Part shown: one piece after another, positions 4,660 through 60,861 of the stretch
Layout of the letters: every line of letters starts with the position of its first letter
Position numbering within the stretch: the stretch's first letter is position 1
From: Macrostomum lignano
Taxonomy: Eukaryota
Reading direction: 5' to 3'
DNA: 64,000 nucleotides
Assembly (NCBI GenBank): GCA_002269645.1
Contig: NIVC01001081.1
Span: forward strand, 124,001-188,000
Program-made: the position numbers and the translations under genes
The notes under the pieces: model-generated
Database searches by the model: none
Told to the model about the DNA's origin: nothing
The model's input: only the letters and a program-made list of their open reading frames with translations

Positions 4660-6214
<1,555 letters not shown>

Positions 6215-6833: not shown

Positions 6834-7508
6834 ATGGCACCAAGAAACTGCAAATCAGCTGACGACAGAAATAAACTGCGAGACGTCGCCGCAAGAGTCA
6901 TGAAACTGCGCCAGGTGTGCTCCAAGTCCCAGTGGCTGCAGTTCGTCAGGGAGCACCGCCAGTTATGCGCCATTCGCACCCTGATGTCGCAGCGCAGACT
7001 CTGTTATCCGATTGCTGACGCCATCGGGCGCGGCAGCGAGGACGAGGCCATCGAAGCGCTTCGACAAAGCGACCATCTGGGCGTCTGGACTTTGACGGAA
7101 CGCTGGCGAGGTCCTGGACTTGAGTCGCTGCTGATGCTGGCCGTGTCGGCGGGAATGTCGAGGTTGGTCGCCGAGCTGGTCAGCCGAAACCCCAACCAGG
7201 TGTTTCGGCTGTACGACAGCAGGGGCCGAAACGCTCTGCACTACTGCTTTGCGGCTCAAAGCGAGTCCTGCCTGGTAGCCGTGCTCAGAGAGTTCCGCGC
7301 GGCCCTCATGAAGAATACGACAGCTGGTGCGGTGCCGCTGCTCCGGGGCCTTCTGGCGGCGATCAGGATGCCGGACTGCGGCGGGGCAACGCCGGCCGCT
7401 GTGAATCCTCTGGAGCGAATGTCCAGAACTCTGGACGCAGCTGCTGCTGCTGCAGAATCCGCTTTGTCGGCTTCGATGACCGCCCTGTCCGCTGCTGCAG
7501 CGGCATAA
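6834..7508 (+). CDS. Small single-exon ankyrin-repeat-like protein (~224 aa)
   Basis: ESLLMLAVSAGMSRLVAELV, DSRGRNALHYC and DCGGATP resemble 2-3 degenerate ankyrin repeats; GC-rich codon usage; first ATG at 6834; AATAAA near 7749. Confidence 0.6.
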   Translation: MAPRNCKSADDRNKLRDVAARVMKLRQVCSKSQWLQFVREHRQLCAIRTLMSQRRLCYPIADAIGRGSEDEAIEALRQSDHLGVWTLTERWRGPGLESLLMLAVSAGMSRLVAELVSRNPNQVFRLYDSRGRNALHYCFAAQSESCLVAVLREFRAALMKNTTAGAVPLLRGLLAAIRMPDCGGATPAAVNPLERMSRTLDAAAAAAESALSASMTALSAAAAA

Positions 7509-7981
7509 GGGGGTGAGCTCGGCCACCACCGGATTCTGGACTGCCATGGCTGGCTGCAACTTACCTGTAGCTTTGACAATAATGGCGTATATCCGCATAC
7601 TGATTCTGAACGCAGTGAAACTCTTTCAAACCCGCATTAGCCTTTCAACTGCCCACTAGGCCTTTCTGATTACGCGTGTTAGTAAATTTATGCACCACAC
7701 TTCACTTTTACTGTTTTGTTTGCTGAAGAAAATTTTATTCGAGTGTTTAATAAATAACGTACAGTGTGCACTGCTAAACACTACAGCACCGTCAAGCAAT
7801 TTACTGCGAAATATATAAATGACAGGTGGCGTAAATTGCTGATTTTTATTTGCTTCTTGCCTCTTGTGATTAGATAAAATCGTTGCGCATCTGCGATTTT
7901 ATGGTTGTTAAGCGCAGCTGTTCGACACTGATCTGGATAGATGTACCTTGTGTAGGTCAATCGGTGCGTTTTTAGAGGTAC

Positions 7982-8345
7982 GTCAGTGAATGTGTCAGTG
8001 TGTGTTATGGGGCGTGTCAGTGTGTGTTATGTGGTGTGTCAGTGAATGTGTCAGTGTGTGTTATGTGGTGTGTCAGTGAATGTGTCAGTGTGTGTTATGT
8101 GGTGTGTCAGTGAATGTGTCAGTGTGTGTTATGGGGTGTGTCAGTGAATGTGTCAGTGTGTGTTATGGGGTGTGTCAGTGAATGTGTCAGTGTGTGTTAT
8201 GGGGTGTGTCAGTGAATGTGTCAGTGTGTGTTATGGGGTGTGTCAGTGACTTTTCAGTGAATGTGTCAGTGTGTGTTATGGGGTGTGTCAGTGAATGTGT
8301 CAGTGTGTGTTATGGGTGTGTCAGTGACTTGCCAGTGAATGTGCC
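7982..8345 (+). repeat. 34-bp minisatellite (gtcagtgaatgtgtcagtgtgtgttatggggtgt), ~10 copies
   Basis: Period 34 seen directly (agtgaa at 8041 and 8075). Confidence 0.95.
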
Positions 8346-8757
8346 TGTGTTTTGCTGGTTGATATGCTTGGTTAGTCAAAGAGGAAACAATAAAAGATAT
8401 GCAAAAAAACTCAAGAGAGTCCAAATGTTTGTTAGAACTCATTTTTAATTGTACTAAAACTTACTTAGCCACCAACGAGCACTTGAGCCCTTCCTGCTGA
8501 GCCTTTCCTGGTACAAAATTTGCCCTTTTTAGACTTTATTCGGTCTTCCAATCGACTCTCCCTTTTTGCCAGTTATAAATCCTCACGGGGTTGGAATCCA
8601 CACTAATTGAAAGTGAAATTAAAATTATTTTCTGTTGAATTTCGAATGTACGAGCTGCATGTACTTTACGCGTGCATTTTACGCGTACATATTTTCTGCG
8701 AAACGTAGTTGTCCACTCTTTCCCTTTCCCATCTATCCGGGCCTTGGGTTGAGGAGG

Positions 8758-9834
8758 TCATGGAGACGTCAGTCCCTCGTCACGCCGCTGCTCCACCTCC
8801 GTCTCCAGGTAGACGCAGCCGTTCCTCGCAAACAACGTCACGAGCCGGTCGGTCCCCACGAATCGCGACACAGCGGCGCAAAACTCCGTCCCGCTTTCGC
8901 CAATTGACGGCTGCTGAGCGATGAAACTTGCCCTGACAACCAAGTCCTCCGTGTGGCGCTGCCGATGCAGCAGGGGGAAGGTGACTCTGGCGACAAACGG
9001 CCAATCCCACATGTCGTCGAGTTCGGTCTGGACGAGCTCTAGCTGAGTAGTCACGTGACTACAGTCGGCGTCCGCCTGTCCGTTGAGAAACAACCTGACA
9101 CGGAACTTGTGGCCGTATCGCTGGGTCATGAAAGGCGGAGACAGCAGACAGGCTGACGGGTTGCTCGCCGCCTCCCGCAGTCTGTCGGCAATGCCAGTGA
9201 CTTTCCACAGCAGGCAACCGTCATAAGAGATCTGCTCCAGGGTCTCAACGCGTCGCGTGATTCTGAGCAGCAGCTCCTGCTGTTCAATCGCTTTTAGTTT
9301 GGCTTGCACGCAATGCAAAAGGGTCCCGAAACCGCTGGCTCCGCCAAACTCCTTCATCAGGTCCTCGATGGCAATGGTTGTCAGAGCCCAATTTGCTAAA
9401 TTAGGCTGAATTCTCTTCAACGCATCAAACAATCGCAATACGTTTTGCTCCCCAGACCGAATTTCTCGGGCTGTAGCATCCAACTGTAGGGGATCCAGAG
9501 CTGAGGCCTTGAACTCATCACAGATGAGCTCCAGATGCTTGTCTGCCCCAACAGCGTAGTGGCCATTCAAATTCTCTTGAATGTGTCAGTGTGTGTTATT
9601 CCTCTGGAAATTGCACCTGAGACGACAGAATCTGCAACTGACCAGCTTCTTGGGAAACTCGGCCTTGTGACACTGAAGACCATACCGATTGAATGAACCT
9701 TCGTGACAGAGCGCGCACTCAATGACTTCATCGCAAGCGATCCCCGATGATTGGCGCAGTTGACTGGCGACTTCCCCGGGAAGCTCCATGGATTCAGGAA
9801 GGTCAGCAGCTGCTCTGCTTTCCGGTCTTGTCAT
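8758..9834 (-). pseudogene. RING-less TRAF-family gene (degenerate zinc fingers, coiled coil, MATH) with in-frame TGA at 9588-9586
   Basis: ORFs 9586-9834 and 8758-9570 share one frame, separated by a single TGA. CALCHEGSFNRYGL..HKAEFPKKLVSCRF aligns with CPHCREGNFNRQAF..HLSQCPQKPTPCRF of the paralogs. MATH motifs SYDGCLLWKV, SPPFMTQRYGHKFRVRLFLNG, DWPF, FARNGCVYLETEV. Confidence 0.8.
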
Positions 9835-10772: not shown

Positions 10773-13700
10773 TCAAAGCTTCAGCTCAGAACCGATCATT
10801 TGTTGCCACATTGCTCCTGCTAGCTGCCACTTTCGCTGCAGTTCCTCCGTCAGCCATCGGGGAAGCGCCACATTCAAACTGAGCAGCTTCTCAAAAATGA
10901 GCAGATCCGTTTTGGGCTGGACAGAAAACAGGGCAGCAACCAGCAGCTCCTGAATATCCGCGTCCTCCCGCTCAGCCACAGATTGGATCCAGGCCTTGGC
11001 ATGGTGGACTTCGCTGTCGGGTAGCAGCTCAAGTCTCAAGGCCCACAGCAGTGCATCGAAGTTTAAGTAGAAATAATCTGCGCCACTATGAAATTTGAGC
11101 GGGAAGCACTTGATCAGAACTCCAGTTAAAAAAATTAATTTTGGGCGCCTTTCGAACTCGAAGCAGAACTTCCACGCGGAGTCCCGGCTCCTCAGATGCC
11201 GCCACACGAACTCTGTAGTCGCCTCGGTCGCCGACCTCTCAGCGGACCAAGCGATGCCTCTGCTCACCGAGAGGCCTCTGCACTGGCTCACGATTCTCTC
11301 TGCAGTTCCTCGGTAGCCGAACTTCAGGCAGGCCAGCGCTCTGAGAGCCTCCCGAGCTGAGCCGGCGCAGTCTGGCAGTCTGGCAATCAGCTCTGTGAGC
11401 GACTCCTGAGACAGCGGGCTGCAGTCACCATGGGAGAGACGCATCAGACACTCCCTCACCACGTCGTAGATCTCGTGGTACTCGACAGTGTTTGAGTTAG
11501 GCAAAGACCTCAAAACTAAAACTGGCAGGGTCTGGAACGGGTGGAAGTAAAATATCCCAGACTCATCCACAGGTCTCAGACTGCTCATGAACTGCTGCAG
11601 CAGCTGAGGCAGTCGATCAATTACTGTTCTCAGTGTGCTCGCGATGCTGCCCAGAGTCTGGTCCATGCTTCCGTCTTTCCCCACTGCACCCTTGAGGTAC
11701 ACAGCGACGTCGCTCAGGAAGAAGTGCTCCATGATCCGGCCGTGAGCATTGTCGGGCGAGCGACTGCTCTCCACACAGCCAAGCAGCATCTGCAGCGACC
11801 TCCTCACGAGACTCACGAGGTTTTCCGGCTTCCACTGCTCGACCGGCGTCTCCTCCACCATTCGGAACGTGATGGACTTCACATGGTACGGCTTCAGGCC
11901 TTGCTGGTTGAAGCCGTCCTTGCTGCAGATGACCTTCTTGATCAGGTACTTGAGAGTGACGAACAGCTGGCCTTGGAGAGTAGTGAGACTTCTGAGCATC
12001 CGCTTCTCCAGGAAGCTGGTGCTCACACGGAGCTCCTGGCCTCCTCGACCAGGAGAGGCTGCGTGCACCACGTGACAGGGCGTTAAGTCAGAGTCGACAA
12101 CCTTCTGGAGGGCCTGCAGCACCGGCTTCGGGATGTTCGATCGGGAGATTCGATGGGGCTGGAGAGGCGCGATGGGCGGGTAGCGGCAGAGGCGGCCAGC
12201 AGTAACCCTGTCCATGGCTGGCCTCAGTGCCGAACCGTCTGACGGCAGAGCAGGATTCGATGCTGCAATGGCAGTACGAGATGCATCGTAATTGACGCAT
12301 TGCATGAAAATGAATCTAATATAATTAATTCAATAATTTGATATAATTACTAAGAAAATCTGGCAGTTGTCGATTTTGTTAAGCTGCCAAACCAAAGCAA
12401 GGATTAATTCATCATCTTTCATTCAAATAGAATTGAAACTCACAGTATCCTTTACACTGAAGATGCCCATTGCTAAACTCATGCTGGACTGGATGTCCGC
12501 TGCACTTGCATATGCCTGTTGGGTGGTACAGCTTTCCAGGAATCAGCTCCATCACATCAATGTCTGAAGCGACGTCAGTTCTGCCGTCCAGTGTTTTCAG
12601 ATTGTTTCCCCAGCCTTCAGAGTAGCTGCCAACCACAAAGCGCTTGTCGTAATCCTGCCTCCTTCTCAGGATCTCCTGCAAGACGTCGGCAACTGCGCTC
12701 TGCAAAGCGGCTCTGGAGTCCACAAATCCTGCATGAGTAAGCGTCGAGTGCAGCTGCAGGCCAAGTGGATTGCTTGGATGGTCTCTGAAATCGCGTAATG
12801 GTTAATTTTTATGTGATTTTAGATACATTTCGATCCTATGCTTCAAGTTTGACTTATTTTTTTTAATCCAACTTTACCTGATCTCAGAAATCGATAAATC
12901 TGCTTCGTGCGAATTTTCATCCAGTGAGCAAACAGATTTACTCATGTCTGCCTGTGCCAGCATGAGCAATCTAACGACATGTCGGTGACCCTTCAGTGAT
13001 GCAATCTGTAGAGGCGAGCAGCCGTCGTTTCGCTGAAGATTTACGTCAGCCTGGGCTTTTATGAGTAAATCTACGATTTCTTGATGGCCTCTGCGTGCCG
13101 CAATGAACAGAGGCGTTTCGCCTGCGTTACTTTGAACATCGACGTTGGCTTGTGCTCTGATGAGCAAAACCACTACTTGCTGGTGGCCATTGTGGGATGC
13201 AATGTGGAGTGGCGAAGTTCCGTTTTGAAGTTGGAAATCAACGTTGGCACTCGTTCTGAGGAGTGACGTCACAACTTGCTGATGTCCATTTTGTGATGCC
13301 ACAAAGAGAGGCGACTCACCGGTTTTTCTTGAAAGATTAACATCGGCTTTGGCTTCTATGAGCAAATGGACAACTTGGAGATGACTCAGATGGCAGGCAA
13401 TGTATAGAGGCGACTCGCCCGAGTCTCGTTGGAGATTAACATCTGCTTGGGCTTTGATGAGCACTTCTACCACTAGCTGATGACCATTCTGTGAAGCAAT
13501 GTAAAGAGGTGACTCTCCAGTGTTGAGTTGAAGATTGACGTTGGCTTGTGATTTTACGAGCAATGTCACCACACGATGATGACCATTCTGTGAAGCAATA
13601 TAGATAGGTGACTCGCCAGTGTCTCTTTGAAAATTAACATCTGCTTTTGCAGTGATGAGTGACTCGGCAATTTCGCTATGACCCTCATGCGACGCTATAT

Positions 13701-15318
13701 AAAGCGGCGACTCGCCAGTGTCTCTTCGAGTATTGACGTCTGCTTGGGCTTTGATGAGCAAGTCTACGACTCTTTTTTTATTATTTTGCGACGCAACGTA
13801 TATGGGTGAGCATCTGTCGGTCTGTTGAAGATTGATATCAGCCTGGGCTTTGATGACGGAGCTAACTATTTGGTGATGTCCATTTTGCGAAGCAAGAAAG
13901 AGAGGCGAGCAGCCATAAATATCTTCTTGGAGATTGACATCTGCTTGAGCCTTTATCAGCGAGTCAACGATTTGACGGTGGCCTTTGTGAGACGCAATTA
14001 TCAGAGCTGTTTCACCCGTGTTTCGCTGATGATTAACGTCGGCTAGCGCTTGTATTAGTGAGTCCACGACTTTGCGATGACCGTTCTGCGATGCGATGTA
14101 GAGTGGTGACGAGCCATTAACGATCTCTTGACGATCGATGCGTGCCTGCGCCTTTATGAGGGATCCAGCAATTCGTTGATGACCGTTCTGCGATGCAATA
14201 TGAAGTGGGGAAATTCCGTCTCTATTTTGAAGATCGATATCGACTAAAGCAGTTATGAGTAAATCCAGCACTTCCTGATGACCTTGTTGGGACGCAATGT
14301 AGAGAGCTGATGAGCCATTTACTCGCTCCTGAAGATTGACGTCGGCTTGCGCTTTAATGAGCGAGGTCACTACCTGCCAATGCCCCTGTTGTGCTGCGAT
14401 GTACAGAGGCGAGCAGCCATGAATGTTTTTCAGATTGACGTCCGCTTTTCCTTTAACAAGCGATTCAACTATTTTCCGATGACCTTTGTGCGATGCGATG
14501 AAGAGTGCCGATTCACCGGTACTGATTTGAAGGTTGACTTCCGCTTGCGCTTTAATAAGCGAGTCGACAATTTGGTCATAGCCTCGAATCGATGCAATAT
14601 GGAGAGTTGATGGACTATTTGAATTCTTTCGAAGATTGGGATCGGCTTGCGCTTTGATAAGCAGATCGACTACTTGCTGATGACCGCTCTGGCACGCGAT
14701 GAAAAGCGGTGACACCCCGTTGTCTCTTTGGAGATTGACGTCAGCTTGTGCCTTGATGAGCGAGACCACAACTTTTGCGTGGCCACTCTGTGCAGCGATA
14801 TACAGCGGTGTGGTGCCATCGAAAAGTTGAAGGTTGACATCGGCGCGTGCTTTGATGAGCGATTCAACGACCTTCTGGTGACCACAATGAGATGCTATTG
14901 TGAGAGGTGTGTCGCCAGTGTTCTGTTGAATATCTACATCAGCTCCCGCTTTAATGAGTAGATCCACAATTTGCTGATAACCATTCTGGGATGCAATAAA
15001 AAGAGGTGAAAAGCCGTTGACTTGATCTTGAAGATTGACACCAGCTTTAGCTCTGACAAACATATCCACCACACGAACCTTGCCAAGAGCGCAGGCCAGA
15101 TGCAGTGGGTAGAACCTTTGCCCACTCAAGGAAAGTTTTCTTGTTCTGTTAGCTGGATTTTTCAGGTAAAGCGCGATGCGCTCGAGGTCTTCAGTGTTGA
15201 CCGCCTCGAGAACTTCTTCGTCGGTCATTTCTGATGCTCCATCCTGAGAGGCAGCCCTACCAAGGGACTGCATCAGCAGCACAGCAACAGTTCTGAGGGT
15301 CGTCCAGAGTGACTTCAT
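10773..15318 (-). CDS. Ankyrin-repeat (22x) - Mab-21/cGAS-like receptor (cGLR) nucleotidyltransferase fusion, ~1423 aa; exons 15318-12878, 12784-12444, 12262-10773
   Basis: Intron 12877-12785 (ATCAG|GTAAAG..TTTCAG|A, phase 2) and intron 12443-12263 (T|GTGAGT..TTGCAG|CA, phase 1) give a continuous 4272-nt frame. NTase motifs VGSYSEG..SDIDVM and AMDRVTA; Mab-21 C-lobe RVSTSFLEK..LKYLIKK..LKPYHVKSITFRMVE..MEHFF. 22 GxxPL/AL ankyrin units counted. Alternative start at ATG 15228. Confidence 0.85.
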
Positions 15319-16561: not shown

Positions 16562-18424
16562 CATTCAATTTTGACAGTCTGTAGTGATCCCTTGTTGAAA
16601 TGTTCAACTTATTTTGACAAATCCAAATGCAATAATGACGATTATTTCAACCAAAAATGACAAACTCCAACCTTTATTAACAATTTGCAAGCAATTTTGA
16701 CAGTGTGCATTCAATTTTGACAGTGTGCATTCAATTTTGACAGTGTGCATTCAATTTTGACAGTGTGCATTCAATTTTGACAGTGTGCATTCAATTTTGA
16801 CAGTGTGCATTCAATTTTGACAGTGTGCATTCAATTTTGACAGTGTGCATTCAATTTTGACAGTGTGCATTCAATTTTGACAGTGTGCATTCAATTTTGA
16901 CAGTGTGCATTCAATTTTGACAATGTGCATTCAATTTTGACAGTGTGCATTCAATTTTGACAGTGTGCATTCAATTTTGACAGTGTGCATTCAATTTTGA
17001 CAGTGTGCATTCAATTTTGACAGTGTGCATTCAATTTTGACAATGTGCATTCAATTTTGACAATGTGCATTCAATTTTGACAGTGTGCATTCAATTTTGA
17101 CAGTGTGCATTCAATTTTGACAGTGTGCATTCAATTTTGACAGTGTGCATTCAATTTTGACAATGTGCATTCAATTTTGACAGTGTGCATTCAATTTTGA
17201 CAGTGTGCATTCAATTTTGACAGTGTGCATTCAATTTTGACAGTGTGCATTCAATTTTGACAATGTGCATTCAATTTTGACAATTTGCAAGCAATTTTGA
17301 CAGTGTGCATTCAATTTTGACAGTGTGCATTCAATTTTGACAGTGTGCATTCAATTTTGACAATGTGCATTCAATTTTGACAGTGTGCATTCAATTTTGA
17401 CAGTGTGCATTCAATTTTGACAGTGTGCATTCAATTTTGACAGTGTGCATTCAATTTTGACAGTGTGCATTCAATTTTGACAGTGTGCATTCAATTTTGA
17501 CAGTGTGCATTCAATTTTGACAGTGTGCATTCAATTTTGACAATGTGCATTCAATTTTGACAGTGTGCATTCAATTTTGACAGTGTGCATTCAATTTTGA
17601 CAGTGTGCATTCAATTTTGACAGTGTGCATTCAATTTTGACACTGGGTTACAAAATAGTGCCTTTTTCTCGCTGTCTATGAACAAAACTTGCATATGTGC
17701 ATCCATTTTTGACAAAGTGCATCCAAAAGTGACAGATTACATTACATTGTATTCAAGGGACTACTCAGGTGTTTGAGTAGTCCTTGATGGATTGCATTGC
17801 ACACATTGAATTTTTTAGTTAAACCGCGCGTAATACAGTGATAATCAGTTTGGCAAGTCGTATTATGTTCTGTATGGCATGTCCGCGAGTCAACGCCATA
17901 GTTAGCGACGACGACAGGAGGCGGTTAACCCAGTAATTAACCGGTTAGAAAAAGTCGTGCCCATGAGAATGGTGACGACTTTTTTACCTGACTCGTACCT
18001 TGGGGGATCAAAACAACCACAGCGTATGCCATTGTTAGAAGTGGACGAGTAGAAAAGCTGCTAAATGGAGATCAGCCGTTCAGATCACTCATGAGCGCAT
18101 TGAAACTGTTGAATTGGTTGGGATCTGATCGAGTGGGCTAGGGTTGATCTGAGCCATAATAGTCACTTTTGGATGCACTCTGTCAAAAATATGGATGCAC
18201 GTATGCAAGTTTTGTTCCATAGACGGCGACGGCGAGACAAAGGCACTGTTTTGTAACCCAGTGTCAAAATTGAATGCACACTGTCAAAATTGCTTGCAAA
18301 TTGTTAATAAAGGTTGCATGGAGTTTGTCATTTTCAGTTGAAATTCGTCACTATTGCATTTGGATTTGTCAAAAAAAGGTTAAACATTTCAACAAACGAT
18401 GTTAAGGATTGTCAAAATTGAATG
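16562..18424. mobile_element. Foldback/MITE-like element with long inverted arms; left arm expanded by a satellite
   Basis: 16562-16720 plus 17641-17733 is the reverse complement of 18162-18424 (e.g. ctgggttacaaaatagtgcc vs ggcactgttttgtaacccag; gcatccaaaagtgac vs gtcacttttggatgc); ~430-bp unique spacer. Confidence 0.75.
16701..17640 (+). repeat. 20-bp tandem repeat (cagtgtgcattcaattttga) x47
   Basis: Exact 20-bp period; caatgtgcat variants; one caatttgcaagcaattttga variant unit at 17281 identical to the flanking unit at 16681. Confidence 0.98.
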
Positions 18425-23576: not shown

Positions 23577-23579
23577 ATT

Positions 23580-27320: not shown

Positions 27321-29814
<2,494 letters not shown>

Positions 29815-31127: not shown

Positions 31128-31144
31128 TGTCCCGTGTCTACTGC

Positions 31145-39529: not shown

Positions 39530-39606
39530 TTGTGATCTGTGCGGCTTCAGAGAGCTGATTATATATTCAGCCTTACAAATAAATACTGCCTTTAAATAAC
39601 GCTAAA

Positions 39607-40826
39607 ATCGTCTGTAAACAGCCCCCAGATTCGTCTTTAAACAGCCCTGAGATTCGTCTGTAAACAGCCCTGAGATTCGTCTGTAAACAGCCCTGAGATT
39701 CGTCTTTAAACAGCCCTGAGATTTGTCTTTAAACAGCCCTGAAATTCGTCTGTAAACAGCCCTGAGATTCGTCTGTAAACAGCCCTGAGATTCGTCTTTA
39801 AACAGCCCTGAGATTCGTCTTTAAACAGCCCTGAGATTCGTCTGTAAACAGCCCTGAGATTCGTCTTTAAACAGCCCTGAGATTCGTCTGTAAACAGCCC
39901 TGAGATTCGTCTTTAAACAGCCCTGAGATTCGTCTTTAAACAGCCCTGAAATTCGTCTGTAAACAGCCCTGAGATTCGTCTGTAAACAGCCCTGAGATTC
40001 GTCTTTAAACAGCCCTGAGATTCGTCTTTAAACAGCCCTGAAATTCGTCTGCAAACAGCCCTGAGATTCGTCTTTAAACAGCCCTGAGATTCGTCTGCGA
40101 ACATCTCTTAAAATCTTCTGTAAACAGCCCTGAGATTCGTCTTTAAACAGCCCTGAGATTCGTCTGTGAACAGCTCTTAAAATCTTCTGTAAACAGCCCT
40201 GAGATTCGTCTGTAAACAGCCCTGAGATTCGTCTTTAAACAGCCCTGAGATTCGTCTTTAAACAGCCCTGAAATTCGTCTGCAAACAGCCCTGAGATTCG
40301 TCTTTAAACAGCCCTGAGATTCGTCTGTGAACATCTCTTAAAATCTTCTGTAAACAGCCCTGAGATTCGTCTTTAAACAGCCCTGAGATTCGTCTGTGAA
40401 CAGCTCTTAAAATCTTCTGTAAACAGCCCTGAGATTCGTCTTTAAACAGCCCTGAGATTCGTCTTTAAACCGCCCTGAGATTCGTCTTTAAACAGCCCTG
40501 AGATTCGTCTGTAAACAGCCCTGGGATTCGTCTTTAAACAGCCCTGAGATTCGTCTTTAAACAGCCCTGAGATTCGTCTTAAACAGCCCTGAGATTCGTC
40601 TGTAAACAGCCCTGAGATTCGTCTTTAAACAGCAATAAGATTCGTCTCTAAACAGCCCTGAGATTCGTCTTTAAACAGCCCTGAGATTCGTCTTAAACAG
40701 CCCTGAGATTCGTCTGTAAACAGCCCTGGGATTCGTCTTTAAACAGCAATAAGATTCGTCTCTAAACAGCCCTGAGATTCGTCTTTAAACAGCCCTGAGA
40801 TTCGTCTGTAAACAGCCCTGAGATTT
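39607..40826 (+). repeat. 23-bp minisatellite (aaacagccctgagattcgtctt/gt) immediately 3' of COG2
   Basis: Seen directly (taaacag at 39661 and 39684). Confidence 0.96.
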
Positions 40827-41844: not shown

Positions 41845-41944
41845 GCCGTTCATGGTCTGCCTGGAATATTACACGGTAGTACCTTGTATGGCGGAGTTAT
41901 AGAGAAGCGGTGGCCGTCTCGGTGCTGTTTCTCTCTTTAGAATT

Positions 41945-44250
41945 ATGTCTGCTGGAATTGTGCTCTCTACGCGTGCCCTCGCAGCCAGTCTGGTAGATGA
42001 GCGCAGTCTGCCGGGCCACCTGCGCTGCAGCAGCTGCTCCAGGCCGGTGACCAACTCCTTCCAGACACCGCACGGCTGCCGCCTGTGCCAGTCCTGTGTG
42101 GACAGCCTGCCAGCAACCGACAAGGTGCGGTGTCCGGGCAAGAGCGACGCATGCAAGGACCCTGATGAGGAGATCGACATCTGCCAGTCGTCCTGCTTTC
42201 CCGACATCGCATCTCGACGAGAGCTCACTAAGCTGAAGGTGTTCTGTCCGAATAAGTCTGAAGGTTGTCGGGCTGAGTTTCCATGGCGACAGGCCGACGC
42301 TCACCTGGCAGATTGCGAATTTGAGAAGGTGAAGTGCGAAATGTGCGGTGAGGCAACGCTTAAGAGAGAGTTGGATGAGCACAAGAGTAGCGCGTGCAGA
42401 CGGAGGCTGGTCAACTGCGATGACTGTAAAATCAAGGTAAAGCCCTAGACTAAGCTCAATTTTTGTGAATTTTAACTAAGGCGACTATTGAGGTTGGGTG
42501 ATAAATGTCTAAAGCTATGGTTGCACGGACTTAGACGCGATTGGTTGAACAAGCCGGATCTATTTTTAGCCTATCGTACATTAAACTGGATAAGAGAGTG
42601 GAAATGCCTGTCCTCTGCTCCTATTCATTATTTCCTTCCCTCCTTATGTAACCGAAAAGCTTGATGTGATGCATAGTTAGCTGCAAGGCATATTTAGCTT
42701 GAGATGCCTGTTCCATCAAAATCCAATGAAGATCCAATCCAGCGAAAGGCATTCGTACGAAAGTATGTCGCACCAAAGCGGGAGATCGAGACTTGGGTGG
42801 AATTTGTCGACTCGGTCAGGCCAATTTAATATTTTACTTCAGAATTTTACTGTTTTGAACGCGAACTTTCTTTTACGTCGTTAAATGGAACCACTTCTAA
42901 CTTTTCAATTCTCGCTCTTAACAAACAAATTTTGAAAGAAAAACGTTTTTGACGCAAAATATCCTTCCTTTACTACTGAGTAGAAAAAAGTTGATGGTTA
43001 TCAAGTAAAATTATTGCTTAGTTTATCTATTAAACAGAAAACTTGAACAACCTCCCCAGGTAGTTGCTGGCGCGATGGACTCCGAGCACAAGAACCTGCA
43101 ATCGATGTCCTGCTGTCGGGAGTTCAGAGATCCGTGTCCGCACTGCCGGGAGGGAAATTTCAACCGGCAGGCATTTCTCAGCCACCTGTCCCAGTGCCCT
43201 CAGAAGCCGACGCCGTGCAGATTTGCTCATCTTGGCTGCGACTTTGTCGCTCCGGCCGCAGAGATGGCGGCTCACTGCAGCGAAGCAGCCGACAGGCACC
43301 TTCAGCTTATCGATGCCAAACTGCGGGTCTCCAGCGCATCCGCTCAGCACAGCACTGCTAGTGGCTTTCCAGGTGCGGCTGCAGGTGGTGCAGGTGCCGC
43401 AGTTGATGGAGCGTCCGCGGTCACCGGGTCAGGAGAGGCGGTGTCCAAGGAGATGAAGGATTTGGAGCGCAGAGCCATGAATATTTTCAGCAAGTTCAAA
43501 GGGCTGCAGCCAAACATAGCGACTTGGGCACTGTCTACAATGAGTCTGGAAGACTTCATCAAATCTTTCGGAGGTCTTCAAGGATTCAAAACAATGCTGA
43601 AAAATATGGACGACAAGTTGAGACAGATGGAGGCTGCTGAGCGATCTGGAGCAGGAACCACTGGCGCCTCAGCGGCATCTGCAGCTGCAGCTTCGGCCTC
43701 ATCTGCTGAAGTCTCCCGGCTGATAGAGCAGATGCGGGCAATCGAGCTTCGCTTTGAAACCCTGGAACAAACCTCATTTGATGGCTGTTTAACGTGGAAG
43801 GTGCTTGGCTTCGCGGCCAGACGCAGGGAGGCAAAGAGCGGCTCCCCAGTCTCTTTGTTCTCGCCGCCGTTCATGTCTAAACGCTACGGCTACATGTTCC
43901 GCGTTCGCCTTTTTCTGAACGGACAGGAGGGTGCCGAGGGCAGTCACGTGACCATTCAGTTGGTGCTGATCCAGAGCGAGTACGAGGATGTGCAGGACTG
44001 GCCGCTTGTTGCCGACGTCACCTTTCGTCTGCTGCATCCTCGAACTCGATCGGACGATGTTGTTGCTAAGGCGACTCTGTCGGCACAGAAACCGCCAGCA
44101 GCAAGCGATCTGTCAATAAATGCGTCAGTTACAAGATTTGTTAGAATTGACATCCTTGAAGAGAAATTTGTGCGAAACGATTCGATCTACATTGAGACCG
44201 AAGTTGAGCCGAGGCCGAGTGAAGCAAATCGGCGCGGACGTCGAAGATAA
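41945..44250 (+). CDS. TRAF-family protein A (RING, zinc fingers, coiled coil, MATH), 560 aa; exons 41945-42436, 43060-44250
   Basis: RING CSSC..QTPHGCRLCQSC..CPGKSDAC; FPDIASRRELTKLKVFCPNKSEGC; several TRAF zinc fingers; MATH SFDGCLTWKV, FSPPFMSKRYGYMFRVRLFLNG, DWPL, FVRNDSIYIETEV. Phase-0 GT-AG intron. Confidence 0.92.
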
Positions 44251-47849: not shown

Positions 47850-48533
47850 TTGTACGGTATGAGCTGGAAATAGAAAGAAAAAGTACGCGCTTGTAGTAAA
47901 ATTCTAGAGTTCCCACTAAATTTAGACACAGTTGGCCTGACAAGGTAGTACCTGCTATACTAGCTTGTTTTTTACCTACTATACATGTAGTACGATGGCT
48001 TTCGTGTTCAGGTATAAAAAGCCGGTCCAGCAGTACGAGCTATTTTTATAATTTTAATCGGCATACATTCCTAGAGACAACAGAATTATGTCTGCTAGCA
48101 TTGTGCTCTCTACGCGTGCCCTCGCAGCCAGCCTGGTAGATGAGCGCAGTCTGCCGGGCCACCTGCGCTGCAGCAGCTGCTCCAGGCCGGTGACCAACTT
48201 CCAGACACCGCATGGCTGCCGCCTGTGCCAGTCCTGTGTGGACAGCCTGCCAGCAACCGACAAGGTGCCGTGTCCGGGCAAGAGCGACGCGTGCAAGGAC
48301 CCTGATGAGGAGATCGACATCTGCCAGTCGTCCTGCTTTCCCGACATCGCATCTCGACGAGAGCTCACTAAGCTGAAGGTGTTCTGTCCGAATAAGTCTG
48401 AAGGTTGTCGGGCTGAGTTTCCATGGCGACAGGCCGACGCTCACCTGGCAGATTGCGAATTTGAGAAGGTGAAGTGCGATCTGTGCGGTGAGGCAACGCT
48501 TAAGAGAGAGTTGGATGAGCACATGAGTAGCGC
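47850..48533 (+). repeat. Segmental duplicate of 54667-~55351 (TRAF promoter + exon 1)
   Basis: Near-identical from ttgtacggtatgagctgg through gagtagcgc. Confidence 0.9.
48088..48533 (+). pseudogene. Truncated TRAF copy B (RING + first zinc fingers only)
   Basis: Nearly identical to exon 1 of A/C with a 3-nt deletion (VTNFQ vs VTNSFQ); breaks into CT-rich sequence at 48534 before the donor; no exon 2 follows. Confidence 0.85.
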
Positions 48534-49978: not shown

Positions 49979-50030
<52 letters not shown>

Positions 50031-50760: not shown

Positions 50761-50786
50761 ATGAGCTGGATTCTTTGGGAGTACGA

Positions 50787-51530
50787 GATCTGCTAGCAGG
50801 AAATCTGCTAGCCGAAGTTTGCTAGCGAGAAATTTGCTTGCCGAAATCTGCTAGCCGAAGTTTGCTAGCCGAAATGTGCTAGCCGAAATGTGCTAGCCGA
50901 AGTTTGCTAGCCGAAATGTGCTAGCCGAAATGTGCTAGCCGAAATGTGCTAGCCGAAATCTGCTAGCCGAAATCTGCTAGCCGAAATCTGCTAGCCGAAA
51001 TGTGCTAGCCGAAATGTGCTAGCCGAAATGTGCTAGCCGAAATCTGCAAGCCGAAGTTTGCTAGCCGAAATGTGCTAGCCGAAATCTGCAAGCCGAAGTT
51101 TGCTAGCCGAAATGTGCTAGCCGAAATCTGCAAGCCGAAGTTTGCTAGCCGAAATGTGCTAGCCGAAATCTGCTAGCCGAAGTTTGCTAGCCGAAATGTG
51201 CTAGCCGAAATCTGCAAGCCGAAGTTTGCTAGCCGAAATGTGCTAGCCGAAATCTGCTAGCCGAAGTTTGCTAGCCGAAATGTGCTAGCCGAAATCTGCA
51301 AGCCGAAGTTTGCTAGCCGAAATGTGCTAGCCGAAATCTGCTAGCCGAAGTTTGCTAGCCGAAATGTGCTAGCCGAAATCTGCAAGCCGAAGTTTGCTAG
51401 CCGAAATGTGCTAGCCGAAATCTGCAAGCCGAAGTTTGCTAGCCGAAATGTGCTAGCCGAAGTTTTCTAGCAGGAATTTTGCTAGCGAGGATTTTGCTAG
51501 CCGAAATCTGCTAGCAGGAATTTTGCTAGC
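50787..51530 (+). repeat. 14-bp minisatellite (gctagccgaaatgt) with 42-bp three-unit higher-order repeat
   Basis: Recurrent gctagccgaaatgt-gctagccgaaatct-gcaagccgaagttt triplets. Confidence 0.95.
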
Positions 51531-54666: not shown

Positions 54667-54903
54667 TTGTACGGTATGAGCTGGAAATAGAAAGAAAAAG
54701 TACGCGCTTGTAGTAAAATTCTAGAGTTCCCACTAAATTTAGACACAGTTGGCCTGACAAGGTAGTACCTGCTATACTAGCTTGTTTTTTACCTACTATA
54801 CATGTAGTACGACGGCTTTCGTGTCAGGTATAAAAAGCCGGTCCAGCAGTACGAGCTATTTTTATAATTTTAATCGGCATACATTCCTAGAGACAACAGA
54901 ATT

Positions 54904-57062
54904 ATGTCTGCTAGCATTGTGCTCTCTACGCGTGCCCTCGCAGCCAGTCTGGTAGATGAGCGCAGTCTGCCGGGCCACCTGCGCTGCAGCAGCTGCTCCA
55001 GGCCGGTGACCAACTCCTTCCAGACACCGCACGGCTGCCGCCTGTGCCAGTCCTGTGTGGACAGCCTGCCAGCAACCGACAAGGTGCGGTGTCCGGGCAA
55101 GAGCGACGCATGCAAGGACCCTGATGAGGAGATCGACATCTGCCAGTCGTCCTGCTTTCCCGACATCGCATCTCGACGAGAGCTCACTAAGCTGAAGGTG
55201 TTCTGTCCGAATAAGTCTGAAGGTTGTCGGGCTGAGTTTCCATGGCGACAGGCCGACGCTCACCTGGCAGATTGCGAATTTGAGAAGGTGAAGTGCGAAA
55301 TGTGCGGTGAGGCAACGCTGAAGAGAGAGTTGGATGAGCACAAGAGTAGCGCGTGCAGACGGAGGCTGGTCAACTGCGATTACTGTCATACCAAGGTAAG
55401 TATAACGGTATAAACAGATATGCGTACCTTTGTTGGTGACAATTTTCTATCTACTGGTTTGAATTTCCCATATACTAAACTTTTAAACTGATTTTAGTAA
55501 TCGGCAGTTTTGCATATGTCTCACTTAGTTCAATGTAGGAAGCACAATATTAGAGACAGAAAAGCCGCGGAGGGTGTGTCACTCTCGGTCCACGCAAACA
55601 AGCACGCGCCCCCTGCGTGCACGAAGCTTTGGCCTTGGGGCATGAGATAGTCTAATTTCACGACTTGCGTACTGAAATTATAGAGAAATTAGTCATCAAT
55701 AACGCTTTATACTACTTACGCCTTCCGACAGTAGGCACTATAGTAGAAACTACCTTTGCTTGCTAAATTTATATATGTAGCTTGTATCACAGGCATTACA
55801 AAAATAAAGCCTAAATCAATGAAACAAACTTAATCATTGATAACCCACCACAGGTAGTTGCTGGCGCGATGGACTCCGAGCACAGGAACCTGCAATCGAT
55901 GTCCTGCTGTCGGGAGTTCAGAGATCCGTGTCCGCACTGCCGGGAGGGAAATTTCAACCGGCAGGCATTTCTCAGCCACCTGTCCCAGTGCCCTCAGAAG
56001 CCGACGCCGTGCAGATTTGCTCATCTTGGCTGCGACTTTGTCGCTTCGGCCGCAGAGATGGCGGCTCACTGCAGCGAAGCAGCCGACAGGCACCTTCAGC
56101 TCATCGATGCCAAACTGCGGGTCTCCAGCGCATCCGCTCAGCACAGCGCTGCCAGTGGCTTTCCAGGTGCGGCTGCAGGTGGTGCAGGTGACGCAGTTGA
56201 TGGAGCCTCCGCGGTCACCGGGTCAGGAGAGGCGGTGTCGAAGGAAATGAAGGATTTGGAGCGCAGAGCCATGAATATTTTCAGCAAATTCAAAGGCCTG
56301 CAGCCAAACATAGCGACTTGGGCACTGTCTACAATGAGTCTGGAAGACTTCATCAAATCTTTCGGAGGTCTTCAAGGATTCAAAACAATGCTGAAAAATA
56401 TGGACGACAAGTTGAGACAGATAGAGGCTGCTGAGCGATGTTCCGGGGTCCTAGCGCCCGCAGTTTCAACTACGTCTGCTGAAGTTTGGCGTCTGATGAA
56501 GCTGATGCAGACGGTTGCTCTTCAAGCATCCGGCGACTGTTCTGAGGATGGCTCTGTGTGGCCTTTTAATGCGCAGCATCAGACCTCCTTGGACGGTTGC
56601 ATCACGTGGAAGATTGACGACGTGGCCGCTAGACTTGAGAAGCTGAAGAACGACGCGTCCACCTGCTTGTTCTCGCCGCCGTTCATGTCCAAGCACTGCG
56701 GCTACTTTTTCTGCGCTCGGCTGCTTCTAAACGGGCAGGCCGAGCCCGGCGAGGGTTACGTGACGGCCCAGTTGGTGCTCAACCGAGGCGAATACGACGA
56801 CACGCTTGAATGGCCGCTTGTTGCCAAAGTCACTTTCCGTCTGTTTCATCGACAGTCCCGCTTGGAGGATGCTGTGGCTGAGACAGGCCTGACTGCCGAG
56901 CGCCCTGCCGCTGCGCCTGATCTTGCAAGCAATGCGACCGTCGTGCACTTTGTGAAAATCGACACTTTGATGGAGAAGTTTGTGAGAAACGACTGCGTCT
57001 ACTTGGACGTAGAGGTGGAGCCGCGGACCAAAGAGGCGGCTCGGCGGTCCCGTCGCAGGTGA
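54904..57062 (+). CDS. TRAF-family protein C (RING, zinc fingers, coiled coil, MATH), 566 aa; exons 54904-55395, 55854-57062
   Basis: Same architecture as A; donor AAG|GTAAGT, acceptor CACAG|GTA; MATH SLDGCITWKI, FSPPFMSK, EWPL, FVRNDCVYLDVEV. Confidence 0.92.
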
Positions 57063-57585: not shown

Positions 57586-58480
57586 TTACTGCTGGACCTC
57601 GGTGACAATGGTGGCCTCCAGGTAGGCGCAGCTGTTCTTCACAAACTGCCAGTCGCCCTCATCATCCAGCTGGTCGCGAAGATGCCGCAGCTTTGCTGGC
57701 CAGTCGCGCAGGACGCAGCAGGTTCGCTCCGACGAGCTTTGGTCGTTGCTGAACGTCTCCGATTGGCCGGTCAGGCCTCCACAGGATGGATCTCGCAGAT
57801 CAATCAGGCGGGCTTGCAGGCGGGCTCTTAAGGGCCTCTGGACGGTGCTCTGCGTTATCGGTGAATGAACGCTTCATGGCTTCACCATGGTACACTAATG
57901 GTTTGCTTGTGGTTCCAGAGATTGTAACAAGCATCTCACATGCAATCGCATTATTTTAGTTTAAAGACGCTTAAGATGAAACTACAGCAGGACGCTATCT
58001 GCATGTACAAGAACTCGTAACTTTTGCCCCTGCTCGCGAGTTGGGTTAATCGGCTCGGCTTACCTGCAACAGAAGCAGTTCAACTTCCAAGGCAGCTTCA
58101 TCTTCACCACCAGCCTCTGTCGCCGGGGTCGCTCGCAGCTGCAGACGAAGTCGAGTCCCAGTGTCCGGCCACCTGAAGTCCGGCGAAGCCAGCGAGCTCT
58201 GCCGGGCACTGGCTCCGCTCTGCAGGCGCAGTCTCAGGTGGGGGTAGTTGATTTTCCACACGAATCGCCCCTCTTCAATGCAGCTCGGCGAGGCCAAAAG
58301 TTCGAGCAGGCGGCAGCAGGCGTCGAAGCGTTCGGGCTGGAGGTCTCCAGGCCAGACACCCTCTTGCGATCGGTAGTCCATCACACTGCTCAGCAGCTTC
58401 TCAATTTGCTCTTTCACGGCGTTTACTTGATTGGCCAGGGTCATCGGAGCAGTGCCTGCAGCTTCTTGCGTGTGCTCCAT
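57586..58480 (-). CDS. RING-less mini-TRAF (coiled coil + divergent MATH), 226 aa; exons 58480-58064, 57849-57586
   Basis: Exon 1 EEGRFVWKIN..LASPDFRWPDTGTRLRLQL; donor CAG|GTAAG; acceptor GCAG|; exon 2 (absent from the ORF track) STVQRPLRARLQARLID..WQFVKNSCAYLEATIVTEVQQ*; phase 0, 681 nt. Confidence 0.72.
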
Positions 58481-58589
58481 CGCTCGCTGAGATCCTTTGG
58501 AAAGCTGGGACTAAAGTTTCGCCTTTCTGTAATGCTTTGCTGCATTCTAATTCTTATAGAGAAAGCGGAGGCGTTATGGCGAGACTCGC

Positions 58590-58770
58590 GGGAATCCCCC
58601 GTAAACCCCTGCAGTTAAATATCAGGTACTGTACTAGGAAGTTTGTCGTCATTGCTGCACAGCTGTTCTATTTTTATCCCCGCCTGCTCTCTGCCCCAGG
58701 CAGTTTAGCTGTGAACGGCTACGCTATACTAGAGCTGGAGTACACTTGCTGCATTGGCGAGGGAATTCCA
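58590..58770. promoter_or_regulatory. kappaB-like motifs in the 435-bp divergent promoter between two mini-TRAF/MATH genes
   Basis: GGGAATCCCC at 58590-58599 (fits GGGRNNYYCC) and GGGAATTCCA at 58761-58770. Confidence 0.4.
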
Positions 58771-58915
58771 TGGCTTTTTTACAATCGAGGTTTTGCCCAT
58801 GGCACCGCCATTGTCTTGACTACAAAACAAAGGGAACTTTTACCTTGCCGAAAATTTCTCCCTTAGCTACTAAAACTGAGACATATTGAAGCTCTTCACT
58901 GGTTTACCAGCATCA

Positions 58916-59524
58916 ATGTCGCAAGGACTGGATGCTCAGCAGGAAGTGGCAGCCATCGATCTGTGCAAGCAGTCGATTTTGCTAGCCCTGACTGCTCAGG
59001 AGACTGCAACGGACGATGCCATGCTGCAAGAGGCAATACGTGAGAGCAACCGTCTCCAGCTTTTGCTCTGCGAACCTTCCGACGCTGGGAGGACTGTGCT
59101 CAAAATCGTTGAGCCTGAGCGTTGGGCCAGGCTGAGCTCAAGGCATCGCATCCGGCTGCTCTCCAACCATTTCTATTTTGACAGCCCAACTGACCCCCGC
59201 TATCGGTACACGTTTCAACTGAGGCTGCAGCTCGAGAATGGCTCGGCCACGGCTGCCGTGCTGGCTGCTGTCGGTGAGTTCGATGACCTGCTGACGTGGC
59301 CGATGGCCTGGCCAGTTGTGGCCGAGTTTTTCGGCACGGAGAGCCGCAGTTTCGGTAGAGCGCCGTTTCTCCGCAATGTCCACCGTCCGAATTCGACTAC
59401 CGGAGCAGCTGCCGATGAAGAGGAGCCAGTCTGCTGCCAGATGCAGCTGCCTGAGAACTGGCTGAGGGAGGCCACAGTTAACAATGCGGCCTACCTGACT
59501 GCCCACCTGACTGCATCATTCTAA
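58916..59524 (+). CDS. Small single-exon divergent MATH/TRAF-C protein (~202 aa)
   Basis: Helical N-terminus, then LLSNHFY..YTFQLRLQL..VGEFDDLLTWPM..HRP..VNNAAYL, matching TRAF GEYDxLLxWPF and NDxxY motifs; first ATG at 58916. Confidence 0.68.
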   Translation: MSQGLDAQQEVAAIDLCKQSILLALTAQETATDDAMLQEAIRESNRLQLLLCEPSDAGRTVLKIVEPERWARLSSRHRIRLLSNHFYFDSPTDPRYRYTFQLRLQLENGSATAAVLAAVGEFDDLLTWPMAWPVVAEFFGTESRSFGRAPFLRNVHRPNSTTGAAADEEEPVCCQMQLPENWLREATVNNAAYLTAHLTASF

Positions 59525-59999
59525 CTAAGGTGTGAGATGCTTTAAACAGCTTTGGTTTTATGTGTGACGAATGTGTTCTCAATAGGTTTGAAGTTGTGCA
59601 GAGCAGCTGTTTCTGAGCTCGGCCAAGAATATTTGATTGCTCTCTATCCAAAATTCTAATCACCTCTTTTCTTAATACTTTTGCTTTCAATGTACGAGTA
59701 GATATGGTGACATTTTTTCTACTTTCTTGTAAACGTTTCATTATGGCTTTAAATGCCAGTTTGTTTATCCTGGTATCTACTGTCAGCAGACAGCCATGTC
59801 CGGTGTTAGGTTAAAAAGAACTGAAATTTTACCAAAGAGTGCCTTTTCTTCTTTTCTTCTTTAAGTTTGTGCTCTATAAATAAATCAATATACAGCCCCA
59901 TTTTCAAGGTAAATTTGCTTCAGTAATGTTACCTGGATAGTACGCTCGTATTTTAACAGATTTTTTTATTACAAATAATTTCGGTTACTAACTGGTCTA

Positions 60000-60009
60000 G
60001 GGATTTTCC
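60000..60009 (+). promoter_or_regulatory. kappaB-like 10-mer GGGATTTTCC ~290 nt upstream of the third mini-MATH gene
   Basis: Fits GGGRNNYYCC; a weaker GGGAATCTCA at 60126. Confidence 0.3.
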
Positions 60010-60297
60010 ATGAAAACGGAGTGAATAAGTCTGCGTCTATTTTTAGCGCATTATTAATAAAGTAAGTACTTTCAACCGGGTACCAAACTGTGACACTCCT
60101 AGCAGGTCTATTATTATCTAGAACTGGGAATCTCATGGCGCTGCCGCCCAGCGCGTACATTGCCGCCAGTTGCTGGCGCCCAACTTCTGTTTTCGTGGGC
60201 TAACCGCGGATGCACCTCTGCCTGCATCTGGCTGGCTATACAAACCCGAGACGTTCCCGTGTCAGCAGAAATCAGCAACCCGCAATTCAGCAACACC

Positions 60298-60861
60298 ATG
60301 GCTCATAACCAGTCGAAGAAGCAGCTAAAGGAAACAGTAGACCTGCATCTGCGGGCCGCTCTGATGGCCACCAACAATCCCGCGCTCCAGATCGAGCACC
60401 AGAAGACCGCGGAGACGGCGCACCACACGCTCCAGAAAGTGCTGAATGCCCCCTGCGACACTGGAGACACCTGCCTGAAAATCTTCCAGCCCGATCAGTG
60501 GCGGCAGCTGAGCTACCAACAGACAGTCGCGCTGCTGTCGAACCAGTTTTACAGCCCAATTGAGGCTGGCAACCCGTACAGCTTCATCCTGAAGCTGAAG
60601 ATCGAGCACGGCGCGGCCGCAGCTGCAGTGCTGACTGTTCCCGGACAGCTCAACGACCTGCTGACGTGGCCGATTGTCCGGCAAGTGTCGGCCGAGTTTG
60701 TCGGTGGCAAATTCCGACCTTACGGGCGCGCCTTCGGCTTCGTGAATTTTCGACCCGATGTCGACCGGCCGAGTGAGCTGCAGCTGCCGGAGGACTGGCT
60801 GGACGCCGCAACCGTCGGGGAGGCCGCCTACCTGCACGTGCACACGAAGGCGATGCAGTGA
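60298..60861 (+). CDS. Small single-exon divergent MATH/TRAF-C protein (187 aa), paralog of 58916-59524
   Basis: LLSNQFY..YSFILKLKIEHG..PGQLNDLLTWPI..DRP..LQLPEDWLDAATVGEAAYL is colinear with the upstream paralog; first ATG at 60298. Confidence 0.68.
   Translation: MAHNQSKKQLKETVDLHLRAALMATNNPALQIEHQKTAETAHHTLQKVLNAPCDTGDTCLKIFQPDQWRQLSYQQTVALLSNQFYSPIEAGNPYSFILKLKIEHGAAAAAVLTVPGQLNDLLTWPIVRQVSAEFVGGKFRPYGRAFGFVNFRPDVDRPSELQLPEDWLDAATVGEAAYLHVHTKAMQ

Follow-up and report, generated by a model that had tools for sequence, protein, structure and literature searches.

The 64-kb stretch of DNA analysed here (the window; contig NIVC01001081.1, positions ~124001-188000, assembly GCA_002269645.1) comes from Macrostomum lignano, a flatworm with a free-living habit, and holds, within 52 kb, a gene in which an ankyrin (ANK) array is fused to a cGLR-type nucleotidyltransferase (the ANK-cGLR) together with seven TRAF-derived pieces. 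Our preferred reading, to which we assign a probability of roughly 60%, is that two separately expanded immune-type gene families share these 64 kb by happenstance and not as a demonstrated cGLR-TRAF unit; i.e., the linkage of the ANK-cGLR to TRAF genes is probably incidental. An earlier note on the same DNA had compiled an inventory of its genes and had proposed, from their clustering, a co-regulated signalling module. That inventory was confirmed almost item by item; the clustering, for the reasons given in the next section, did not hold up as evidence for such a module. We infer an immune role for the genes of this locus, as we do each of the biochemical activities discussed below.

Linkage of ANK-cGLR and TRAF genes at this and paralogous loci

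The features on which the argument turns are as follows (window coordinates throughout, with position 1 the first letter of the window).

6834-7508, plus strand: small gene of ankyrin repeats, encoding 224 aa with a tail rich in Ala (Ank_2 E 4e-7, 30.9 bits, above the cut-off)
8758-9834, minus strand: RING-less TRAF-like copy with degenerate zf-TRAF, putative coiled-coil region and MATH domain (tblastn; MATH Pfam E 2e-15)
10773-15318, minus strand: ANK-cGLR, 1423 aa, three exons (splice sites and joined open reading frame, ORF)
27321-28506, plus strand, with further exons beyond: first exons of a DIMT1-type rRNA adenine dimethylase, a housekeeping gene (RrnaAD E 4e-34)
31145-39529, plus strand: COG2, a Golgi complex subunit and housekeeping gene, annotated at 755 aa (COG2_N E 4e-24; COG2_C E 3e-26 and 2e-16)
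41945-42436 and 43060-44250, plus strand: TRAF-A (BOX15_Mlig005413g2), 560 aa, with putative variant RING, zf-TRAF, putative coiled coil and MATH domain
47850-48533, plus strand: truncated TRAF exon-1 copy with 230 bp of TRAF-B-type upstream sequence (self-BLAST)
54904-55395 and 55854-57062, plus strand: TRAF-B, 566 aa, intact and unannotated
57589-58480, minus strand: third small ORF, tentative two-exon model, with MATH-like motifs only
58886-59524, plus strand: small gene with a putative divergent MATH domain, ORF of 212 codons (hhalign and profile matches)
60160-60861, plus strand, likely ATG at 60298: paralogue of 58886-59524, likewise small and with a putative divergent MATH domain, ORF of 233 codons (hhalign and profile matches)

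DIMT1 and COG2, neither of which appeared in the earlier note, lie between the ANK-cGLR and the intact TRAFs along with 12 kb of AT-rich, repeat-bearing DNA in which inspection by eye revealed no convincing ORF. From the cGLR start to that of the nearest intact TRAF is a distance of 26.6 kb, with the two housekeeping genes in between.

Seven other M. lignano ANK-cGLR loci were examined over 10 kb on each side (140 kb of flanking sequence) by tblastn with every TRAF/MATH protein of the window as query and with hidden Markov models of the TRAF MATH and mini domains; as a positive control, both approaches recovered every TRAF/MATH copy in the window. Neither returned any TRAF/MATH sequence in the 10-kb flanks of these paralogous loci (0/7), where the annotated neighbours belong to unrelated types (HLH, metallophosphatase, peptidase S10, VWA, ribosomal S30 and myosin). 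The linkage that would mark a functional cGLR-TRAF cluster is thus not conserved across the seven M. lignano loci, and this one comparative test argues against a functional module. With the intact TRAF 26.6 kb away, the adjacent TRAF copy interrupted by a stop codon (see below) and none of the paralogue loci linked, physical clustering cannot carry the interpretation placed on it earlier.

The M. lignano genome comprises several hundred megabases. Assuming ~100 MATH genes, in line with the planarian figure of 99-121 transcripts (PMC6109357), and tens of cGLR loci, about one co-occurrence within 30 kb would be expected by chance, a figure that is a rough guide only and depends on those assumptions.

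The TRAF array: 5' homogenization, 3' divergence and derived copies

Both of the full TRAFs listed previously are intact, each with zf-TRAF and MATH Pfam matches. The exon 2 translation of TRAF-A is 100% identical to BOX15_Mlig005413g2 (P0041; gene at NIVC01001081.1:165945-168250, i.e., window 41945-44250), and the two-exon model reproduces the annotated 560-aa protein exactly. TRAF-B, for which no match was found among annotated proteins, uses splice sites homologous to those of TRAF-A (donor AAG/GTAAG, acceptor CAG/GTAGTT, with the slash at the exon-intron junction). The zf-TRAF match in TRAF-B exon 1 reaches E 1.7e-6 (29.1 bits, above the cut-off of 27), with weaker matches elsewhere, and TRAF-mep_MATH is detected in TRAF-A (E 2e-19), TRAF-B (E 4e-19) and the stop-interrupted copy (E 2e-15).

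TRAF-A and TRAF-B resemble vertebrate TRAF3/TRAF5/TRAF2 and TRAF6 in layout, with TRAF zinc fingers that are joined by a linker to a MATH/TRAF-C domain and preceded by a putative RING-like region. Against the PDB, TRAF-A matches the TRAF-C domain of TRAF3 (E 8e-23), with TRAF5/1/2 weaker, while residues 23-170 align with RING-zinc-finger structures of TRAF6 (E 6e-16) and the segment between the zinc fingers and MATH aligns with the TRAF3 coiled-coil segment. In contrast to the vertebrate proteins, ligands 3 and 4 of the putative TRAF-A RING read H-x-C instead of C-x-H, a variant also present in a 54%-identical relative (P0043), and no Pfam RING model matches this region at E <= 0.01.

Self-BLAST identified the exon-1 segment three times (41939-42440, 48082-48533 and 54898-55399) at 97-98.6% nucleotide identity; exon 2, by comparison, is only 80% identical in nucleotides between TRAF-A and TRAF-B, with MATH domains 54% identical in amino acids. 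The synonymous divergence (dS) between TRAF-A and TRAF-B rises accordingly along the gene:

Exon 1: dS 0.014
Zinc-finger/coiled-coil part: dS 0.156
MATH domain: dS 1.26

The ratio of nonsynonymous to synonymous divergence (dN/dS) lies at 0.28-0.35 in the MATH domain and in the zinc-finger/coiled-coil part; the differences in exon 1 are too few for its value of 1.06 to be judged. Gene conversion acting on the 5' halves of duplicates that are themselves old, and whose MATH domains diverged under constraint, best accounts for this mosaic. The array would have been built by local duplication, with the near-identical RING/zinc-finger halves of TRAF-A and TRAF-B (dS 0.014) being kept so by gene conversion, and their MATH domains (dS ~1.3 at 54% amino acid identity) diverging under purifying selection. 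The combination of a homogenized 5' half with a diverged MATH domain suggests that a single E3/adaptor module is directed to differing partners. Copies of three sorts would have been shed by the array along the way: one of exon 1, now dead; one that lacks the RING and contains a stop codon; and small genes reduced to MATH. Together, these truncated and RING-less derivatives, the homogenized 5' halves and the 54%-identical MATH domains uphold the description of the TRAFs as diversified.

The first of these derivatives, listed previously as a RING-only fragment, indeed shares 97-98% of its sequence with the exon-1 copies and breaks off at 48533 within a CT-rich repeat, 17 codons before the splice donor site, such that no donor is present. 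The second, previously described as a RING-less and stop-interrupted TRAF, was likewise borne out: located on the strand of the cGLR, ~1 kb downstream of the cGLR stop codon, it aligns by tblastn (9717-8773) to TRAF-A residues 21-384 at 38% identity, with an in-frame TGA at 9586-9588, inside a degenerate TRAF zinc finger in which one Cys zinc ligand has been lost. No RING exon was found upstream of this copy. The 275 codons that follow the TGA, MATH domain included, remain open (ORF 8758-9585), with dN/dS of 0.18 relative to the TRAF-A MATH domain at a saturated dS; either inactivation may have been recent, or a MATH-only product may still be made.

Three mini genes with MATH domains had also been proposed, for two of which the homology is probable. 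The plus-strand pair, 58886-59524 and 60160-60861, encodes products with 46% amino acid identity over 168 aligned codons and has dN/dS of 0.53 at dS ~0.9, with both ORFs exceeding 200 codons. Pfam gave nothing significant for either (E 0.085 for one, no match for the other); however, hhalign of the pair against the TRAF MATH domains of the locus returned a probability of 88% (E 3e-6) over 73 columns of the MATH core, including D-x-L-x-WP. Profile searching, run exhaustively against 1.84 billion representatives, recovered five proteins, three of which are multi-MATH proteins with 6-12 MATH domains, and zero detectable orthologues of the pair; the homologue search likewise returned no annotated homologue. 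We regard both as genuine coding genes, each with a putative and highly divergent MATH domain. The minus-strand mini stands on MATH-like motifs: its first exon begins at an ATG at 58480 and ends at a good donor (CAG/GTAAGC) after 58064, the acceptor is ambiguous, and the downstream ORF (to 57589) carries DWP...FVKNSCAYLE, with no significant match to MATH by hhalign (probability 4.5%).

These observations bear on whether the bulk of the TRAF-derived pieces, namely the fragment of exon 1, the copy with the stop and all three minis, consists of dead relics, which would reduce the array to two genes plus debris. The missing donor of the exon-1 fragment, the TGA in the RING-less copy, the absence of the minis and of TRAF-B from annotated proteomes, and the want of a significant MATH match for the third mini are all consistent with decay. 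However, the plus-strand minis have kept ORFs of 212 and 233 codons at a dN/dS below 1 despite dS ~0.9, the stop-interrupted copy retains an intact MATH ORF with a low dN/dS over 275 codons, and TRAF-B is intact with conserved splice sites. We consider wholesale decay somewhat unlikely on this basis. Were the small MATH genes expressed, they could plausibly act as decoys or modulators, either competing for MATH-binding motifs or co-oligomerizing. Vertebrate TRAF1, which is RING-less, and MATH-only modulators offer a parallel, since the 8758-9834 copy and the minis likewise keep MATH without an E3 module; the M. lignano minis are, however, far more divergent than these proteins, and a modulatory role for them would be by analogy.

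Expansion of TRAF/MATH genes in flatworms is itself known, with 99-121 MATH-domain transcripts in Schmidtea mediterranea (PMC6109357). Local multiplication and diversification in a free-living flatworm is common to both species; the M. lignano array differs in being described at the genome level, with its mosaic of 5' conversion and 3' divergence and its MATH-only derivatives.

The ANK-cGLR is an intact gene with cGLR active-site motifs

The exons of the ANK-cGLR, all on the minus strand, are as follows.

15318-12878, exon 1: N-terminal hydrophobic stretch and ~20 ankyrin repeats
12784-12444, exon 2 (341 bp): nucleotidyltransferase core with the GS and DID motifs
12262-10773, exon 3: strand with the third Asp, Mab21 helical lobe and 245-aa C-terminal domain

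Joined, they yield a coding sequence of 4272 nt (1423 aa) with zero internal stops and canonical GT-AG introns. The 814-codon ORF at 15318-12877 (minus strand) consists nearly entirely of ankyrin repeats (Ank_2 E 2e-172). Intron 1 has a consensus donor (ATCAG/GTAAAG) and acceptor (TTTCAG/A), while intron 2 (TACT/GTGAGT ... CATTGCAG/CA) opens into the 510-codon ORF that the earlier note had designated as the cGLR; the same exon layout is repeated at the paralogous M. lignano loci that were fetched. At the N-terminus (window 15318-15240, minus strand), the hydrophobic stretch MKSLWTTLRTVAVLLMQSLGRAAS resembles MGFLQRLFSAVAACCLRVFGRRAS of the paralogue P0007, and may be a conserved segment for targeting or anchoring.

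Searching with the cGLR part of the protein gave at least 40 clusters at E <= 0.001, all from M. lignano except for three short unplaced fragments, and most with ankyrin repeats. Because the best of these clusters is only 68% identical, the ANK-cGLR of the window lies outside the annotated protein sets; a look-up of the ANK ORF as an annotated product also gave no record. The gene is an intact, unannotated member of a known Macrostomum family of at least 40 protein clusters. This family is large and already catalogued, and ANK-cGLR fusions, such as that of the coral Stylophora pistillata, in which an N-terminal ankyrin array is likewise fused to the nucleotidyltransferase, have been described (Li et al. 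2023).

Two side observations concern this family. A 347-aa protein labelled as originating from a Kangiellaceae bacterium metagenome-assembled genome (P0031), encoded by a contig of 1 kb, shares 42% identity with the M. lignano cGLR family, and two metagenome fragments (P0030 and P0034) are nearly identical to it; P0031 is probably animal DNA that was binned into a bacterial assembly. At the locus of the ANK-cGLR P0007 (L002), a second, fragmented Mab21 copy (1574-2736, minus strand) lies ~7 kb upstream of that gene on the opposite strand, an instance of local duplication and decay in the cGLR family too.

Sequence-level detection of the fold is partial. In the nucleotidyltransferase part of the protein, Pfam matched Mab-21_C only, at E 8e-4 and below the cut-off, and PDB sequence searches (single-sequence and profile) matched cGAS over the helical lobe only (E 1e-5 with the profile, for which a trimmed alignment was used instead of full-length homologues, the latter being swamped by ankyrin matches). 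An AlphaFold2 model was built on the closest paralogue (P0001, 68% identical over the same region) from a 30-sequence alignment, with pLDDT of 87.6 and pTM of 0.89. Foldseek of this model against the PDB returned cGAS (E 3e-7) as well as MAB21L1, coral Sp-cGLR1, MB21D2, MiD51 and bacterial CD-NTases (CdnE), with 370-400 columns aligned to cGAS catalytic domains of 345-360 residues. The cGAS/Mab21 fold of the ANK-cGLR can thus be regarded as established at the level of a predicted structure.

Classification of cGLRs by Li et al. relied on an active-site motif, homology over both lobes and AlphaFold similarity to known enzymes; the strict motif is h[QT]GS X8-20 [DE]h[DE]h X50-90 h[DE]h, while the methods give a looser G[S/G] (Li et al. 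2023, PMC9980059). The window protein reads VVGS (52-53), 20 residues, D74-I-D76-V, 54 residues and M-D131-R (numbering of the paralogue alignment). Its one departure from the strict motif is the Val at the Q/T position before GS, and its sequence fits the looser form. The active-site motif, two-lobe homology and (via P0001) predicted structural homology are all present. Across the window protein and ten paralogues, down to 39% identity, G52, S53, D74 and D76 show no variation, and at least 90% of the sequences keep D131. D131, within a predicted strand A-x-D-x-V-x-A, was assigned as the third catalytic Asp from motif, spacing and predicted strand, not from structural superposition. These features, the conserved GS...DxD...D motifs among them, support the earlier naming of this gene as an ANK-cGLR.

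A candidate substitution of the third catalytic Asp by His (CHVVHAA) was also considered, and was dropped because its context matches a later strand of coral cGLR (VHVVMAL...FRLSFSLAE). It is with this strand that hhalign of the family against coral cGLR (from the supplement of Li et al.) pairs CHVVHAA...LRVSTSFLE (more fully CHVVHAASPGxxGxxLRVSTSFLE), in an alignment that has the expected register and is not significant (probability 1.2%).

The ~245 residues that follow the Mab21 domain are common to all members of the family. An AlphaFold model of this C-terminal domain, made from the window sequence itself (10776-11510, minus strand), attains pLDDT of 87.2 and pTM of 0.86, and a fold search of the PDB gave no significant match (best E 1.2). 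The modelled domain is mainly helical with a small sheet.

From this layout of ankyrin array, cGAS-like nucleotidyltransferase and family-specific C-terminal domain, the ankyrin array and/or the C-terminal domain would bind an activating ligand or partner, upon which the nucleotidyltransferase core, with its GS loop, DxD and third Asp, would synthesize a nucleotide second messenger. Enzymatic activity is inferred here from motifs and model. Alternatively, the Macrostomum ANK-Mab21 proteins might be scaffolds or nucleotide binders akin to MAB21L1 or MiD51, which would leave the locus without a second-messenger enzyme. MAB21L1/2 and MiD49/51 have the Mab21 fold with no known second-messenger synthesis, and share with the M. 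lignano family the overall fold and comparable Foldseek scores, those of MAB21L1 and MiD51 being near those of cGAS. Detection of only the C-terminal lobe by Pfam and the Val before GS also fit with such a role. Furthermore, five M. lignano proteins of the same family were cloned for the screen of Li et al. (entries 89-93) and are unnamed in the main text, with flatworms outside the groups listed for the 15 active enzymes (PMC9980059). Yet the majority of cGLRs in that screen failed to show activity purely for want of a known ligand; moreover, the M. lignano family, as opposed to MAB21L1/2 and MiD49/51, retains the GS loop as well as the full set of three acidic residues, (nearly) invariant to ~39% identity as would be unexpected after a loss of catalysis, and its motif spacings of 20 and 54 residues fit the published motif. 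A non-catalytic role is unlikely in light of this conservation.

Relative to the cGLRs described by Li et al., the two-lobe cGAS/Mab21 fold, the GS...[DE]h[DE]h...h[DE]h motifs and the allowed spacing are all shared. The M. lignano gene differs in (i) adding a confidently modelled 245-aa C-terminal domain without a PDB fold match, (ii) having a very long ankyrin array (~20 repeats in an 814-aa exon) and (iii) originating from a phylum whose species are mostly reported to be without cGLRs.

Weighing the proposed cGLR-TRAF module

A co-regulated module would have a product or surface of the ANK-cGLR feeding into the neighbouring TRAFs, with the MATH-only genes tuning the response. Several observations are consistent with this idea and weigh against an incidental linkage. 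One cGLR is physically near seven TRAF-derived sequences, a density within 52 kb that is unusual at first sight, and the closest of these lies only ~1 kb downstream of it on the same strand. The paralogue flanks were covered for 10 kb per side, while the intact TRAFs of this window are 26 kb away. The TRAF MATH domains have diversified under selection, and vertebrate STING signalling makes use of TRAF3 and TRAF6. Finally, kB-like GGGRNWYYCC sites in the window number 8 versus 3.85 +/- 2 expected, a marginal excess that was reached in 4/100 shuffles. Three of these (58590-58600, 60000-60009 and 6632-6641) are <400 bp upstream of small genes: one is a palindrome between the two divergently oriented minis, one precedes the third mini and one the small ankyrin gene. 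Motifs so placed before three small genes may be a sign that some genes of the locus, at least, share their regulation.

Set against this, the window motif scan located no kB-like site upstream of the cGLR or of TRAF-A/B, and we treat the kB-like excess as a post hoc lead, not as evidence. The adjacent TRAF copy is also the one with a stop codon and a lost zinc ligand, DIMT1 and COG2 stand between the cGLR and the intact TRAFs, linkage was found at none of the seven paralogue loci, and clusters of functionally tied unrelated genes are uncommon in animal genomes. A module of this kind is accordingly doubtful, well short of an even prospect. Highly improbable is its most elaborate form, a functional juxtaposition in which the C-terminal domain or ankyrin array would dock on TRAF MATH domains, possibly bypassing STING, with the MATH-only genes serving as kB-driven inducible regulators. 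Happenstance between two expanding families is the reading that we retain.

Neighbouring genes and annotation of the window

The small ankyrin gene at 6834-7508 was also correctly noted earlier, its Ank_2 match being above the Pfam cut-off; a look-up of the protein among annotated products gave no record. A further gene lies just outside the cluster.

1769-3714, minus strand: putative secreted multi-exon gene with a signal-peptide-like start (weak PAN/LamG similarity)

The earlier note had described this as a lectin-like PAN/LamG gene. The gene is present, but the domain assignment is weak, with both Laminin_G_3 (E 1e-5; 26.2 bits versus a cut-off of 27.6) and PAN_1 (E 0.005) falling below the Pfam cut-off. 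At the edge of the window, a 394-aa ORF (3-1187, plus strand) has an N-terminal SAP match (E 7e-5, just below the cut-off) and a C-terminal CCCH-like Cys/His cluster.

The tandem-repeat load of the window is very high (4662-6214, 16692-17642, 28490-40825 and 50784-51530), including a 1.55-kb (AGAC)n array, and minisatellites with units of 20-56 bp and lengths of 0.3-1.2 kb fill the introns of DIMT1 and COG2 and the gaps between TRAF copies. These tandem repeats account for many long spurious ORFs in the window. Inspection by eye, with no Pfam scan, revealed no convincing genes at 15.4-28, 44-54 and 61-64 kb beyond the first DIMT1 exon at 27.3 kb. Annotated M. lignano proteins in the collections searched did not include the ANK-cGLR, TRAF-B, the small ankyrin gene or the mini genes, and this stretch of the assembly appears under-annotated.

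Implications

The Macrostomum ANK-cGLR family and the flatworm TRAF expansion were both known before, and the window adds further members to each. If the cGLR-TRAF module were real, it would be a rare animal case of an immune sensor kept beside signalling adaptors, and would open up cGLR signalling in flatworms, a phylum said to be mostly without cGLRs. New to the M. lignano catalogue are an unannotated and intact ANK-cGLR with an uncharacterized C-terminal domain, the TRAF-B paralogue and several MATH-only genes, with the tandem TRAFs constituting a clear case of 5' homogenization with 3' divergence. Among the by-products of this investigation, most interest attaches to the C-terminal domain that the cGLR family shares and to the mosaic by which TRAF-A and TRAF-B have evolved.

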